A stretch of 62,892 nt of DNA, the filler included, from Parasitella parasitica NRRL 2501 (taxonomy: Eukaryota > Fungi > Mucoromycota), in NCBI GenBank assembly GCA_025201805.1. It is 13 parts of 12 records of this genome, joined end to end, with 100 filler letters (N's around TTAATTAATTAA, not from the genome) between each part and the next. Parts side by side here need not be neighbours in the genome. Positions count along the whole stretch, not along the records: positions 58,115 to 60,226 come from MU619580.1; 12 more parts are not named here. One strand, 5' to 3'. Positions 3,635 through 60,226 of this stretch are shown in pieces. Position 1 is the first letter of the stretch. Each line of letters begins with the position of its first letter. The translations under genes were made by a program, and so were the position numbers. The notes beneath the pieces were generated by a model. The model was not told the origin of the DNA and did no database searches. It saw only the letters and a list, made by a program, of their open reading frames with translations.

Positions 3635-6334
3635 ATACGAATAAATATATCCAGTTTTAATTGTATATCTATTTCGTATATTAAAACATTTTTTACAATT
3701 AATCACTGCTTATTATATATTTATCATATCAAGTACTTATCTTCTGGTTATGTCCGTTAACGCTACTCCGTCTTCTGCTCAAAGCTTGAATGCTTCTTTG
3801 TTTCCTGATCCGTTGGAAGATTTTGAGTTGGAACCTGTAAATGATGTCCCGGTTATTGCACCCGATGGTGGTGCTGACGCCCCTGGTGGGGGTAATAAAG
3901 AACAAACCAATGGTCCTGGTCGTCATTCTGGTCTGAACGCTGAGGTGAAGTTGGGGCAAGACAATATGGCTATGTCTCTGCTGGGTGACAAGGATAGTGT
4001 GATGTCTTGGTCCAACGAGCAAGATCTTGATTCTATGAGTTACAATGAGTTCGATGAAGAAGAGGCTGTGGAAGGAGCTATCAAGACTTTGCGCAATGAG
4101 AATGCGAACTGTTTAAAAAAGATAGCATTAGGTGTGTTGAGTGAAACTGAGCGTAGTGTGACCTTGTCGAGAGTGATCAAAAACAGACAAGATATTGGGG
4201 CTTTGATGCAGTACAAGTGCGATGTGTTTAACCGAAGTGGCGTGCAGGTTACCAAGGATGTGAAGAAAGGTGAGAGCTTGGCTCTTAACCGCCGTGATTT
4301 GCCAAAATTTCAATTGGCATCCTCTGCCATTAAGGCTTTTCCTAATGAAGAGGTGTTCGAGAGTGTGGATCATTACTTGGCAACTTTCGAAAGTATTTTG
4401 AACTCGTCGTCCTTGGACCTCCAGACTCAGTGGTCCAAGTTATTGCCATTGTGCATGTCTCACAATGATCGTGCGTGGGTAGACAAGACCCTGTTGAATT
4501 GTTCCTCCTGGAAAGATGCCAAGGTTGTGTTTGCGCGTCGCTTTGGATCGGCTGTGGTTACTCGTCGTAACACGGATCTCGTCTTCACCATGACGATGAA
4601 GGCCTCCGAGTCCATCATGGACTATTCTTGTCGCTTCCAGCAAGCAGTTTACAATGCGGGTCTGCAGTTGGACGATCCTCGTGTAGCTGATCGTTTCATG
4701 GCATCGTTAATTTTACCTGTGCAAACAGCGGTTCGTATCACTTTGGTGCGTGAGCAAGGTACTGAGTCTTGGACGGTCGACCGTATTACTCAAGTTGCTC
4801 GTGATGTGTTGGGTGATGATAACACCTTCTATGCTCATGCCACGTCCTTGTTGCCTGGAGCGGTTGCCTCGGGCGTAGAACTGAATGATGTGGATGGGGG
4901 GTCTCGTCGCGGAAGATCTTCTCCTGGTTCGTGGAAAAGGCCGGATAAGAGAGGTGTGCAGAAGAGATTCCATTGTGAGCAACATGGTCCAAATGAGTCG
5001 CATGCCACCAAGAATTGTCAGTTTCTCAAGTTTCAAAGAGCTAAGGCTGAAGGCAAATGCGTAAGATGTTGGAAACAATTTGAGAAAGGTCATGTGTGTC
5101 ATGGTAACAAACCTCCTGGAGTTGGTCCATCTGCTACTGGATTGAGCAACCGTGAAGTTTTTGCGACAAGTGTGGTACCAGCTCCAAAGGCCGAGGTACC
5201 AACCAAGGATCTAGTGGAGATTCACGCTGAGGATGAAGACTCTCTTATGGGAGAATTGAACTTCGATTGTAAGTTACCAAAAGTTGTGAAAAGTGGTGCT
5301 GAGACTAATTTCTTTGCGTTGTTGACACCATTGTTAATTTGTGTAGAACATGATCGAGATGTGAAAGCGGTTGGGAAAGTGGACACTGGTTCACAAATTA
5401 GTTGTATTAATATTAATTTTTTGATTAATAAATTGAGAATTACAAGAGTCCAAAGAGTTGAGGGTCATTTAAAGTTTTTGTCCAAGTCTGTGAAGAGAGT
5501 TGCGATGACATTTCCTTTGAAATTTAAATATGCCAATGGGATTGTGTTTGAACATGCACTTGAGGTAGTAAAATTTGAAGATGACTTGGATTTCGATCTG
5601 CTGTTGGGCGTTGATGTGTTACCAAAAATGAATATTGGGTTAACAGGTGTGGCGTTTCGCATTGATAGCGAGCATATTCATTCTGACGCAGCAATTAACG
5701 ACGAGGACATGTTCAAGAACATCAATTTAGACTGTGACGGAAAGGACCTGGAAGCGGATAATGCTCCAGCAGGAACAGCCAAAGAACGCATAGAATTTGT
5801 GAGATATATTGAAGACTCTTTGAGAAGAAATAAGTTGATACCTGTAACGTCACACTGTCCATTGCCTGAATCCATCATTCGATTGCCAACAAAAGAAGGT
5901 GCGACGGCACATCGCCGTCCTTATCCTATCGCGGAATCGTTGAAGCCAGTTGTGGAAAAGCAGATTAAAGAGTGGTTGAGTACAGAGACTATTGGCCGTT
6001 CCAGAATCAATTCGTCCTTTAACAGTCCTTTATTGGTGGTGCCAAAGCGAGATAAACTGGGAAACATCGTGGATCATCGCGTGTGTTTGGATGTTCGTTT
6101 ATTGAATAGTATTTTGCCACCTCCATTCAACTTCCCCATACCTTTAGTCAAAGATATATTTGAGAATCTTCGAGGGATGTCCTATTTTGGCACCACGGAT
6201 CTAAAAAACGCGTACCATAGATTTTCAATCGAGAAACCGAGCCAAATCAAGTGCAGCTTCTCGTTTAATGGCCAAGGATTTTACTTCAAAAAGGGATGTT
6301 TCGGATTAAATTTATTGCCAAGCCAATTTCAATT
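3635..6334 (+). mobile_element. Ty3/gypsy LTR retrotransposon, 5' part: LTR end (...AACA at 3688) and single gag-pro-RT ORF from 3750, truncated by gap
   Basis: Gag with CVRC..HVC knuckle, protease VDTGS and LLLGVD, RT motifs SPLLVVPK, RVCLDVRLLN and DLKNAYH. Confidence 0.92.
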
Positions 6335-9200: not shown

Positions 9201-12198
9201 CTATTTTTTATGGATAAAGTTGTGCAACTTTCGTCCATACTCCAGGCCAATTAGTTCTTGAAGCGTCTTTTGATTTGAATGGAACAACTCATCCAAGTCT
9301 TCGAAATGGTTCATTATGATGCGATAATTTGTTGAGTTTACGCCTGGCATGCTCCTCAAGATGTCCTGAGGTGTCATGTTGTAGATGGTGTCCCCATCTT
9401 CGTTCCCTTCTGCTCCGACACTAGCCGCTACCTTAGAATCCGGCTCTTCTTCAGTTTTCTAATGAGATAGATGTCCTTAATACTTTTCGGATTTCATAAT
9501 AGACATGTGTTACCTTGAGCTCGCTAAAGACTTTTGCTGTTTCATGAGGACTCGATGACCAGATGATTCGCAATTTCGGGAAAGCTAAAGTCAAAAGCAC
9601 CAGTTTTGACGACAAGGCAGTAACTCGGATGGTCTCCCTCATATCTGCTACGGCTTGCAAAGAAAACGATTTGTTTTCATCAAATTCGATTAATAAGATT
9701 GGGATTTTGTAGGATACAGACATCATTTCACATTGCGTGTACCTGATAAAGGTTAGCCCTTGTTACTCAACTCAGCGACATGCACAACTCACAGTCTTCC
9801 AGAACTGAACGATTGAATGAGATCGGCAATCGATTTACGTTCCACACAAATGTCTGGACTCAGAATGTAATCCCCTACTTGCAAGGTATAGGGCTCAATC
9901 TTAATGCCATCTGCGTACAAGATGGGTGGCAATGAACTACGAAATTCACGCATGTCCACAGTGACAATCTGAGGGCCACTGACAGCTTTTACTTGGCCGC
10001 CTGCAATTCTTGTGCTGGGACGTATGATATCATCTTGTCTTTCTTTGCGCTTATCTGGCAATGGAATCGCCATGATGGATTTTTCATGAATAAGTCGTTC
10101 AAACGACTCTTTTTCTTTGCGTATCAAACTCAAGTAGTTCTGCTCCTCAACCGAGTTTTCATAAAGCATGAAATAAACTCGAATGTCGACCGTAGGGTGC
10201 TGTGTTCTGTAAACCTCAATTTGGCGCACAAACGCTGGACTCGGGTCAAAAAGCACAATAAAACGAGGCTGTGCATCTTGCAAAACTTGTTCATTGGCGT
10301 CTTCCTCGTAGCATTGAATAGTAATCAAAGATGTGTTGGGTATCTCTTCAAAAGTAGGCAGTATATCGTTTTGATTGTAGCGTATCTCATAGGAATCCGC
10401 CAAAGGCCCAACGCCATGAAACCTGTCATCTATGTCATCTTGATCATCTTGATCAGTTTCGTTTAAATTATCGTCCAATCTAACAATGTCCATTAAAATC
10501 AAATCTTTTGACACAATTAGTACAACCTACACAGATATGTTATCAATAACGTCGTCCTGGAAAGTCTCTGCCAATGCCATTGATCTGCTCCCAGAAGAAG
10601 ATGCCGTTGCAGATCCTCCCCTCACTCTTCTACGCTTATTAGGTGGTGGCCTTCCTCGCATTGTAGTGGGCGCAGGTGCTTGTTTAACCGGTTCAACTGC
10701 TTGCATACGATGAATGTTGGCTCTCCACTTGAAAAAGTTTTGAGCAATCTTGGTCAAAAACGGCTCTTCTTCGTTGATACGGCTAATGTAGTCTTTCAAT
10801 TGTGAGCATGTGCGTTTTTCAGAGACCATAATCAATATAGGAGCGCCTTCGCCGTCATTCAGCTGTAGAGCGTCTTGCTCTATCTCTGCCAAAATACTCT
10901 TCAATAGCTGCCATTTGGGTTGTTCCTCGAGCATTAACTTTATATGTTTAGGTATGACAGAATTGTCCTGTCTTTCAGGCAACTCTTTAAACTCTTTCTC
11001 GCCTTGCTTCACATAGACTCTTTTTCGGGCGGCCTACGCATCAACAAAGGCTATCAGACATTGAATCCGTGCAAATTTTTGTTAAAGAAGCCTTACCAGA
11101 ATGGCTCTATTGCCAGCTTCGTACAATAACCATTGGGATTGCTTTATCTGCTTACCATCTTGTGCAGAGTTGGCAGCAATGATGGTTTCGAGAAAACTGT
11201 AAAACGACACGCAATCGTAGGTTGTCAGGTATCTGGACTCCTTATAGAATTAACAGGCATTCATTGTTATGTGTATAGAAACATCATGTTTTACCCTAAT
11301 AATTGACGCAGAATCTTTAAATCACCCACTAATTGTTTAGACGCAGATGTTACTCGGTGCCAGATAGGATCTAACTGACGCCTCACAATTGCATCAAAAG
11401 ACTTGAAAAACGAATTTTCAATGGTAAACTCTCCAACGTCAATCGACGGATTCGATCTTCGCAACTCGGTCAACGTCTCTTCCATGCACTGGACTAGACT
11501 CTGCTGGATGATATCCATCGATTCCGACATGGGCTGGCGCAATTCGACCACATTGTCGTTTGTATTGGCCAAGTCTTCTGATACTGTGATTTGAAAACGA
11601 GGCCATAAATGCACTTTACGCAGAAACAAGGATTTCATAGTGTTTTGTAACGGGGCAAAGCCAGTTACAAAGGCTTCAGGTCTGTCAGAAAATGCTTTAA
11701 TGAAGCCTTCCTGGTTTTTCTCTTTGTATATTCTCAATATCAACTCTTCCATCGAGTTGGGCCTCACCCTATATCGATTAATATCTACTGTTTTTTGGCT
11801 AGGGGGGGGGGGTTTTCTTACCTATGTGCATTGTACACAATAATGCCATTGATGAGCAAAGTTGGAATTCTGTCAAGCAGCATATCAACAGCCAAGATCC
11901 TTGACGTGATGGAGAAAATGCCGCTTTCACGATACATGCTGCTTCTTTTCTCAGCAGGCGTGTTGTACTCAATTCGTCGTATGACATGCTGGCTGGGCAC
12001 ACTGTTAGCAATCAACTGTTCTTGCAGCAACTCGTCCTGTTCTTTTGACGTGTTGATCAGCAGTATCAAATGATTGCCGCCAGAATACACTTGCACAAGA
12101 TGGCAAAGGATCTGAAATATCCCCAGCCCAGGTGACATGATGAGCAGGCCGTCTTCTGTTACGATTTCGGTTAAAATTTGCTTTTGAAAGGCCAGCAT
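9201..12198 (-). CDS. RAD1: DNA repair endonuclease XPF (Rad1/Rad16/ERCC4), multi-exon
   Basis: N-terminal helicase-like region (SITSRILAVDML, FIKAFSDRPE), nuclease VDMREF...GDYILSPDICVERKSIADL, and a C-terminal HhH region. GT-AG introns link the ORF pieces. Confidence 0.95.
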
Positions 12199-58114: not shown

Positions 58115-60226
58115 TTGACCTGATGAATGACCATCTCTAATCAACCCAACAAGTAGTATGATAGTTTACTACTAAGCCAGAACGGCTGATTAGAATTCAT
58201 AACACAACATATAAAGAATAATGGAACGGTTAAGAAATAACGAAACAATTGTCTGCTAGTAAGACGACACTCAAATAATATAAATAGAGATATAAAATAA
58301 CAGCTTATTGCACATTCAATCTACTTTCAAAATAAAGAAGGATTTTAATCGTATCTTGCTTTTTTACACTTTTTTTACTGCGTTTCGCTGCATTTTTTAC
58401 GATTAAACTCAAGTCATTGTTTTCTACTTATCATGTCTGTATCTGCTGGTAGCTCCCCACTCTCATCCCCAGAGCCTGATGAAAACTTGTTGTTGCAAGA
58501 AAGTCAAGAGGAAGACAACGAAGTGTCGAGCTTACCTCACACCACCCAAAGATTAAAGGACATGAACCTCAAAGAAGTTATTAATGAAGAAAAAGCGGAA
58601 GTCGGTCTGTCTGAAGCTACTTCACCCCCACCATCGTTGACCAATGTACTAAAACAAGTTCTGGCAAAAAAAGAAAATGCTCAAACAGCATACTTGTTGG
58701 CTTTGAACAGTGCGAATGTTGATGACGGTGAAGCTGATAGGTTACGAGATGTCGTGTCTAACCTAGAGAAACATATCAAGACTCTATCAAATGGCTTAAA
58801 ATCTGCTTCTATTGCTGCTGCTGCTGTTACAAAGGCATCTGCCAATCTGAACAATGGTTTGAAGATCTCAAAAAGAGACCTACCAAAATTCCAGCTCGAG
58901 GATAACAAGACCAAACCATTTCCTGTCGAAGATGCGTACAAATCTGTTGATCATTTTCTTTCAGAATTCGAGAAAATTGTCTTCTCGTCTGGTCAAGATA
59001 TTGAAACTGTATGGAGAAAATACATCCCTCTTACGCTTTCCTATGAACTTGATGACTGGATGAAGACCGTTGTTCTGAAGGCAGAAAACTGGGAAGGTGT
59101 AAAGTCTGTTTTTAGTAAGAAGTTTGGAACTGTCGTATCAAGGATCCATAAAAGGCGTGCCGTAATGAACATGGAGATTGGATTCGACGAGACCGTAGAT
59201 GAATATTCAAATCGTTTTTTCCGCACAGTTGGTGAAGCAGGCTATCATCGGGATGACCTGACCATTGGCGATATATTCCTCCTCTCCTTGCCTGAAGAAT
59301 GGCAATTGAACATCTGCACTGTCTTACTATCAAATACTAAACGACAAGCCTGGACGACAGGTGAAATTCACAATGCGGCTATTGATCTCCTTGGGGAAAA
59401 AACCCCCCAATCTTGGTTTGCTTCGAAAGGAGAATCTTCAAAAAGAAAGTTTGCTCCTGAGAAAAGAATCGCCATGTCGTCAAGTACTTCCCTTACATCA
59501 AACAACATACCTACATTACCGAAGGCTCGGATGCTGGGCGACAAGAACCTGCCAAATAAAGCATCTTCAAATCCTTGCCGTTTTTGTGGTAGACAATGGA
59601 AACACGGTCATACGTGTGAAGAGTACCGCGCTGCCAAGAAACAGAAAGTTTCGTCTAGTGTCAACGTGTTGACTGTTTCTGCTTCTAATAATAAAGAAGA
59701 AAATGAAGCCCAAATGCTGAACCAAGCAATCAATGAAGTATTCGAAGATGATACTTATCCTTGTAAGTCAAAAAAGACACAAGATAAAAACAAAAACAAA
59801 AATAATATGAAACTAATCACCCCTCTTCTATTAAATAATAGAAGAATTATCGGAAAGGTCGACCCGGGCTCTGATATTAGCATCATAAATAAATCCATAC
59901 TAAATAAAGAATTTTCAAACATTCAAACATCAAAAACAACTGGATATCTAAACTTTTTATCTGTAAATGATGATAATAAAAATAGTACTGTAAAACGAAT
60001 TGGTCAAACGGAGCCAATGAAAGTTACATATACTAATAATATCAAATTCGATCATGTATTTGAAGTCATTGAATTTAATGACGAATTGTCCACTGAATTT
60101 GATGTGCTTCTTGGAGTTGATATTTTACCAAAAATGAATATCTACCTTCAAGGAGTAGCATTCAAGTTCCCTGACTCTGAAAGAAACAACGAGTTAAAGC
60201 AATTCCAAGATATAAATCATGATAAA
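58115..60226 (+). mobile_element. Ty3/gypsy element: 5' LTR (to 58392) and gag-pro ORF from 58433, truncated by gap
   Basis: Gag shares KRDLPKFQL...SVDHFL with the 3750 ORF. CRFC..HTC knuckle, protease VDPGS and VLLGVDILP. Confidence 0.9.

Follow-up and report, generated by a model that had tools for sequence, protein, structure and literature searches.

The 2112-bp contig at positions 58115-60226 of the window, a 62,892-nucleotide stretch joined from 13 parts of the genome of the mucoralean mycoparasite Parasitella parasitica NRRL 2501, is the 5' end of a chromovirus-type Ty3/gypsy long terminal repeat (LTR) retrotransposon. Comparative sequence analysis points to the site directly downstream of its 5' LTR as very probably a primer-binding site (PBS) whose primer derives from the element's own LTR, making self-priming by an LTR-derived RNA very likely. 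A primer of such origin makes the element 'self-priming' in the broad sense in which the term is used for the Tf1/sushi group (PMC7175516, PMC6317226), and a published annotation rule applies this label where a sequence complementary to the LTR begins 0-5 bp past it (PMC6317226). With regard to the kind of primer, the most coherent and best-fitting reading, which we regard as having a somewhat better than even chance of being correct, is that the cleaved and oligo-adenylated 3' end of the element's own RNA would anneal to this site.

The sequence around the LTR end has the geometry on which the original prediction was built. The hexamer AATAAA (58331-58336) is followed by the decamer TTTAATCGTA (58344-58353), which ends 17 nt past it, while the LTR terminates in GCTGCA at 58392 and is followed by TTTTTTACGATTAAA at 58393-58407, a site consisting of T6 and ACGATTAAA. 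The decamer is the exact reverse complement of 58398-58407, and a repeat search recovered the surrounding region as an inverted repeat of 13 nt with one mismatch (58341-58353 and 58398-58410). Within the window TTTAATCGTA matches at these two sites only, with 0.01 matches being expected, and the 40 nt that separate the LTR from the gag start codon at 58433 (58393-58432) contain no TGG. The placement of the LTR end at 58392 was confirmed from two independent directions: a contig from another P. parasitica sequencing run tracks the LTR and diverges precisely after 58392, and a homologous element from Mucor fragilis, flanked by the 5-bp target-site duplication CATTC, has two LTRs that are 99.4% identical and both terminate at this TGCA.

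Relatives of the element were fetched via its Gag sequence from Parasitella (loci L001 and L004), Mucor fragilis (L002), M. ambiguus (L003) and Lichtheimia ornata (L018), from further assemblies and sequencing runs (L005, L008, L009, L010, L016 and L017) and from an IMG/VR contig (L020). One architecture is common to 14 families, i.e. the Parasitella element and 13 others with Gag identity down to ~28-40%, and comprises, in order, a TATA box, AATAAA, the complement of the PBS, a mostly U-rich U5, the LTR end CA, a run of T4-7 and the reverse complement that constitutes the PBS. The TATA box is found as TATA(A/T)A at the equivalent place in 11 of the 14 families, and the complement ends 17-30 nt after AATAAA in 13 of them and 52 nt after it in the remaining one. 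The complement itself is 6-10 nt long and ends in A every time, the next base being T or C, and the U5 spans 29-71 nt with a T fraction of 0.34-0.59 (13 families measured). By the TGG criterion, with no host tRNA set screened, a tRNA-type site is likewise absent from the equivalent post-LTR place in the relatives. Their LTR pairs are of the TG...CA type, show 99-100% identity and are flanked by 5-bp duplications (CATTC, ATGTA, ATGGG and ACCAC); several copies combine 100% identical LTRs with intact open reading frames (ORFs) and target-site duplications and are therefore young. The domains RVT_1, RT_RNaseH, Integrase_H2C2, rve and Chromo are present in full-length relatives, consistent with the gene order gag, protease, reverse transcriptase (RT), RNase H and integrase, and their best relative of solved structure is the Ty3 Gag-Pol protein (7q5b, E 3.8e-76).

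Several individual loci deserve mention with respect to this architecture. A family with 37% Gag identity (L008:1-60) has CACA followed by T6; the next bases, AAGATTATCC, are left without a partner, as the contig lacks most of the LTR. The minus strand of L005:2780-3075 holds a second element, arranged head-to-head with a truncated first one. This element displays T6 followed by ACACATA and a complement TATGTGTA, but the closest AATAAA is 52 nt upstream, which makes it the sole outlier in geometry. The M. ambiguus locus (L003:9700-10000) retains the T6, while its complement AACAATA and its PBS TACTGATA no longer match, and it looks like a decayed copy. In Lichtheimia, RT and integrase-chromodomain genes are enclosed by a pair of direct repeats that are 94% identical and ~4.6 kb apart (L018:17565-22620), and no T-run is visible at the repeat ends. 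L016 and L017 (both JGI 3300066330) are dense nests of young Ty3/gypsy copies with at least three families of this clade, and also hold Tc1/mariner-type DDE_3 transposase genes.

Comparison of these families revealed that the pairing of the PBS with the LTR segment covaries across all 14 of them, and the compensatory change that had initially been noted in a diverged element has its equivalents at the loci fetched here. Thus, the LTR segment and PBS read AATCGTA and TACGATT in the Parasitella element and AACAGTA and TACTGTT in that of M. fragilis, which amounts to two compensatory changes, with further pairs being AAATTGTA and TACAATTT, TCACTGTA and TACAGTGA, and AGTTGA and TCAACT. When anchored at the T-run, the helix formed within a family spans 6-10 bp in all but one of the 13 families measured, as against a mean of 3.2 bp for combinations of LTR and PBS drawn from different families, and each of the columns 2-8 of the helix is occupied by 2-4 types of Watson-Crick pairs. 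The covariation and the anchored helix statistics together imply that the pairing is under selection. Furthermore, a composite motif, defined as CA, then T4-9, then the anchored complement preceded by AATAAA, was encountered 12 times in the 183 kb of fetched DNA, compared to a mean of 0.175 (maximum 2) in 200 shuffles, and all 12 matches sit at junctions of a 5' LTR and gag. On the counts of the decamer and of the composite motif, a chance origin of the match was rejected. Given that the gap between the LTR and the gag start codon is only 25-40 nt, contains no TGG and has nothing else that is conserved across all families, the post-LTR site is the one that can be identified as the PBS.

The features that favor the RNA 3' end as the source of the primer lie chiefly in the T-run. 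It is a pure stretch of T4-7 in all 14 families, as well as in L003, L008 and a variant from run X1, even though the flanking bases have all changed, and it begins precisely at the LTR end as set by the LTR pairs and the target-site duplications. A templated partner for it inside the element was considered and rejected, as no 'segment plus A-run' was recovered in five complete elements with 3 mismatches allowed. Folds of the 5' leader leave the T-run unpaired in 11 of 12 families. The longer the helix, the shorter the run (Spearman -0.73, p 0.0065, n 12), such that the summed duplex comes to 12-15 bp in all families, and an A tail paired to it contributes ~4.5 kcal/mol, shifting the mean duplex energy from -8.9 to -13.4. 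Where a TATA box was found, the complement begins 44-88 nt after it, and the geometry fits a polyadenylation site better than a transcription start. In this context, AATAAA is present within 250 nt past the stop codon in 10 of 14 neighboring host genes (from L002, L003, L010 and L017) versus a fraction of 0.20 of random 250-nt windows, which suggests that the canonical hexamer is widely used in Mucorales. The predicted cleavage falls after an A preceded by a pyrimidine or G, with a mostly U-rich tract downstream. The position of the complement, the conserved pure T-run, the absence of a templated partner and the length trade-off are each predictions of a model in which an oligo(A) 3' end is the primer. 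The possibility that T6 acts as a terminator for RNA polymerase III was also examined and rejected: two T-runs of equal or greater length lie upstream in the U5 and would be encountered before it.

Under the proposed mechanism, the transcript would be cleaved ~17 nt past AATAAA, just after ...UUUAAUCGUA, and the resulting 3' end, made up of ...UUUAAUCGUA and the first few tail A's, would anneal to the PBS. T6 (58393-58398) would thereby pair with A58353 and five non-templated A's, giving the Parasitella element a duplex of 13-15 bp. Inclusion of the tail A's in the primer would place its 3'-OH exactly at the LTR edge and so yield a flush ...CA end with no need for trimming of a spacer. Extension would then copy U5 and R, following which the strong-stop DNA would transfer to R at the RNA 3' end in the usual way. 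The tail would need to be short already, to be bulged out, or to be cut where the duplex ends in a manner similar to Tf1; the cutting of an RNA duplex by the Tf1 RNase H is comparable to the cut required here (PMC7175516; bioRxiv 10.1101/2022.12.06.519325).

The principal competitor of oligo(A) 3'-end priming is priming by the 5' end of the transcript, as in the Tf1/sushi group, which we consider unlikely while granting it more room than any other alternative. Here transcription would start at the complement (58341-58344), the first ~10 nt would fold onto 58398-58407, RNase H would cut after them, and the T-run would serve as a spacer only, which is copied at first and which integrase then trims from the end of the cDNA. 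In Tf1, the first 11 nt of the transcript are the primer and a three-duplex 'pretzel' forms (Levin 1995-1998, as summarized in PMC7175516, PMC4600332 and bioRxiv 10.1101/2022.12.06.519325). Tf1, Tf2, Tj1 and the wider Tf1/sushi group resemble the elements described here in being chromodomain-bearing Ty3/gypsy elements without a tRNA-type PBS, in having just after the 5' LTR a PBS complementary to a short sequence in their own LTR, and in that an RNA-RNA duplex would have to be cut at its end to obtain a 3'-OH. Identical pairing and covariation are expected if the primer is the 5' end. The initial proposal that an oligo-adenylated 3' end is the primer is partly supported, by the pairing of the PBS with the element's own LTR-derived RNA, its covariation, the position of the complement and the features of the T-run. 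Standard annotation rules (PMC6317226) would also call these elements 'self-priming', the location of AATAAA just 5' of the start, where it would be transcribed in the 3' LTR only, would be a sensible design, and the Parasitella element could still have a short R of up to ~23 nt.

Nevertheless, 5'-end priming offers no reason for a pure-T spacer in every family or for the trade-off between its length and that of the helix. The complement lies at a variable distance of 44-88 nt after the TATA box and, unlike the situation in Tf1, 17-30 nt after AATAAA. The flanking duplexes of the 'pretzel' do not form either: RNA folds started from the complement yield the central helix only and leave the T-run unpartnered. 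Moreover, because the complement ends 25-30 nt past AATAAA in L017 (plus strand), L018a, L018b and L020, almost no R would be left in these elements for strand transfer once the primer has been removed, and the helices of 6-7 bp in L010 and L017 (plus strand) are short in comparison to the 11 bp of Tf1. A further difference from Tf1 is the pure T4-7 without a templated partner that lies between the LTR end and the heteropolymeric match, and this unpartnered stretch points to the junction of R and poly(A) at the RNA 3' end as its probable partner.

A second alternative is that the inverted repeat is a structure of the 5' leader alone, with a role in masking of the promoter-proximal polyadenylation site, packaging or dimerization, and that the primer is something else. 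It appears quite improbable. The leader does fold with 58344-58353 paired to 58398-58407 (-16.2 kcal/mol, z -2.3), and the helix would bury the predicted cleavage site in the 5' copy alone. However, no other PBS fits in the 25-40 nt before gag, where TGG is lacking, and it is left unexplained why a run of pure T begins right at the LTR end. Masking by a hairpin, which had been raised in the original prediction as the alternative to self-priming, is compatible with the observed pairing and also with priming, rather than exclusive of it, and explains neither the T-run nor the lack of another PBS. Finally, a host RNA as the primer (a tRNA fragment, snRNA or other RNA with an A-rich end), with the LTR match being incidental, is barely credible: some LTR elements do use internal tRNA fragments (PMC6317226) and no screen of Mucorales small RNAs was made, but the PBS varies from family to family and in each case follows its own LTR, which disfavors a conserved host RNA because such an RNA cannot covary with each family, and the statistics of the composite motif also speak against it.

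Certain observations weigh against priming by the oligo-adenylated 3' end and have to be set beside those favoring it. With a normal poly(A) tail, a 3' flap would remain, and the mechanism hence needs an unproven trimming of the tail to 3-6 A. Parsimony favors the 5' end as the primer, because the related chromoviruses of the Tf1/sushi group prime in this way. Where transcription starts (near TATA +30), where the RNA is cleaved, what the primer is and that the tail is trimmed are all inferred from sequence, and the distance from TATA to the start is a value assumed for Mucorales. In the family represented by the minus-strand element of L005 the nearest AATAAA is 52 nt away, and the plus-strand element of the same locus has an anchored helix of 4 bp followed by a single internal mismatch. 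The family counts given above overstate independence, as the families are phylogenetically related. The sequencing run that covers this piece behaves like genomic contigs of related copies and not like transcripts, and a metagenome scan for AATAAAGAAGG..TT.AA followed by A10 within 15 nt returned only five unrelated, A-rich chance matches.

Candidate transcripts among the fetched contigs were likewise set aside. L019 and L020 were rejected as such, being circularly collapsed assemblies with one LTR: L019:1-5133 and L020:1-5590 are circular permutations with a single LTR and end overlaps of 30 nt and ~120 nt respectively, which could stem either from assembly collapse of two LTRs or from reads of one-LTR circles. 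L008 was rejected on the grounds that the contig breaks inside the LTR. The 5' end of the L005-L007 contigs was rejected as a transcription start, since it begins a few bases past the position of the TATA box in the relatives.

In the Parasitella contig, most or all of the 5' LTR is followed by a leader of 40 nt and by a gag-protease ORF that is truncated where the contig stops, with all the features detailed below being on the plus strand. The 5' LTR extends over 58116-58392; its 3' end is exact (TGCA at 58392), while its 5' end is approximate (58116-58121) because the contig begins there. Similarity to L001:4064-4638 begins at position 5 of the piece. The predicted TATA box TATAAATA (58279-58286), which has an equivalent in the relatives, starts 52 nt 5' of the predicted polyadenylation signal AATAAA and 65 nt 5' of the complement. 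The LTR arm of the inverted repeat (58341-58353), which is perfect over 58344-58353 and covaries with the PBS, is the proposed primer sequence and is predicted to form the last bases of R, with cleavage predicted after A58353. The region that follows, 58354-58392, is the predicted U5; it is 39 nt long, is 54% T, contains two T6-7AC repeats and reads as the predicted U-rich element downstream of the cleavage site. The T6-7AC motif occurs in all three times within 58359-58400 (58359-58366, 58370-58378 and 58393-58400), the third copy being made up of the T-run and the start of the PBS, and weaker versions of it are seen in the U5 of L002 and L004.

Directly 3' of the LTR end comes the T6 run (58393-58398), and then the heteropolymeric part of the PBS (58398-58410), in which TACGATTAAA at 58398-58407 is the reverse complement of 58344-58353 and the extension to 58410 includes one mismatch. 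It is followed by a near-palindromic motif TCAAGTCATTG at 58409-58419, which is kept 3' of the PBS in the closest families, recurring as TCAATCATTGA in L002, L004 and a variant in run X1. This near-palindrome, TCAA(G)TCATTG(A), is confined to these closest families (L002 ~9980-9992 and L004 ~5342-5352), and as a guess might be a dimerization or packaging signal. The gag-protease ORF (58433-60226), open at the contig end, is identical across the aligned part to the P. parasitica protein P0002, which is encoded on a contig of 2112 bp. Its match to the Retrotrans_gag domain is weak and under the Pfam cut-off, and it includes a zinc-knuckle-like Cys/His motif at 59576-59617 and a protease motif VDPGSD near 59858-59875.

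The above geometry invites comparison with other systems in which reverse transcription starts at a defined edge. In the case of Ty1, the initiator methionine tRNA binds a PBS that directly adjoins the LTR and begins with TGG. The two systems would have in common a primer 3'-OH at the LTR edge and a cDNA end that needs no trimming; the bases at the LTR edge are, however, T's in the elements described here, and the primer is proposed to be derived from the element, whereas that of Ty1 is a host tRNA. LINE-1, by target-primed reverse transcription, uses T-rich genomic DNA to prime synthesis on the poly(A) tail as the template. There too a duplex of oligo(T) and poly(A) positions the start of reverse transcription, with the roles reversed relative to the present proposal, in which the A-tail would prime synthesis on a U-run of the RNA. 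Searches of the full-text literature recovered no account of an LTR element that is primed by a poly(A) or oligo(A) 3' end, though such absence is not proof. To our knowledge, few solutions to the primer problem have been described for LTR elements, namely the tRNA 3' end, the half-tRNA and the Tf1-type 5' end. SM-Tcn1 and the Tcn1-like chromoviruses provide a potential link: neither a tRNA-type nor a self-priming site was found in them and their mechanism 'remained unclear', and the sequence between their 5' LTR and gag was described as 'conservative and thymine-rich' (Novikova et al. 2010, PMC2864245). Compared by description only, this resemblance is a lead and not a match.

There is about an even chance that this chromovirus clade of Mucorales uses a third kind of minus-strand primer, distinct from both a host tRNA and the transcript 5' end, which would be either the element's own cleaved, oligo-adenylated 3' end or a short polyadenylated RNA consisting of R only. 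If this were the case, non-templated A's would belong to the duplex of primer and PBS and would set the LTR boundary, and the same could possibly hold for Tcn1-like elements. The elements look young, and their occurrence in culturable fungi makes the idea directly testable. Automatic annotation would name these elements 'Tf1-like self-priming' and thereby hide the difference. The choice of the primer is a defining step of retroelement replication, and a primer at the poly(A) junction, if true, would represent a further solution to it and a new variant of self-primed reverse transcription across Mucorales. It would explain elements without an assignable PBS, and it would tie reverse transcription to 3'-end processing, such that only an RNA that has been correctly cleaved and adenylated could prime.

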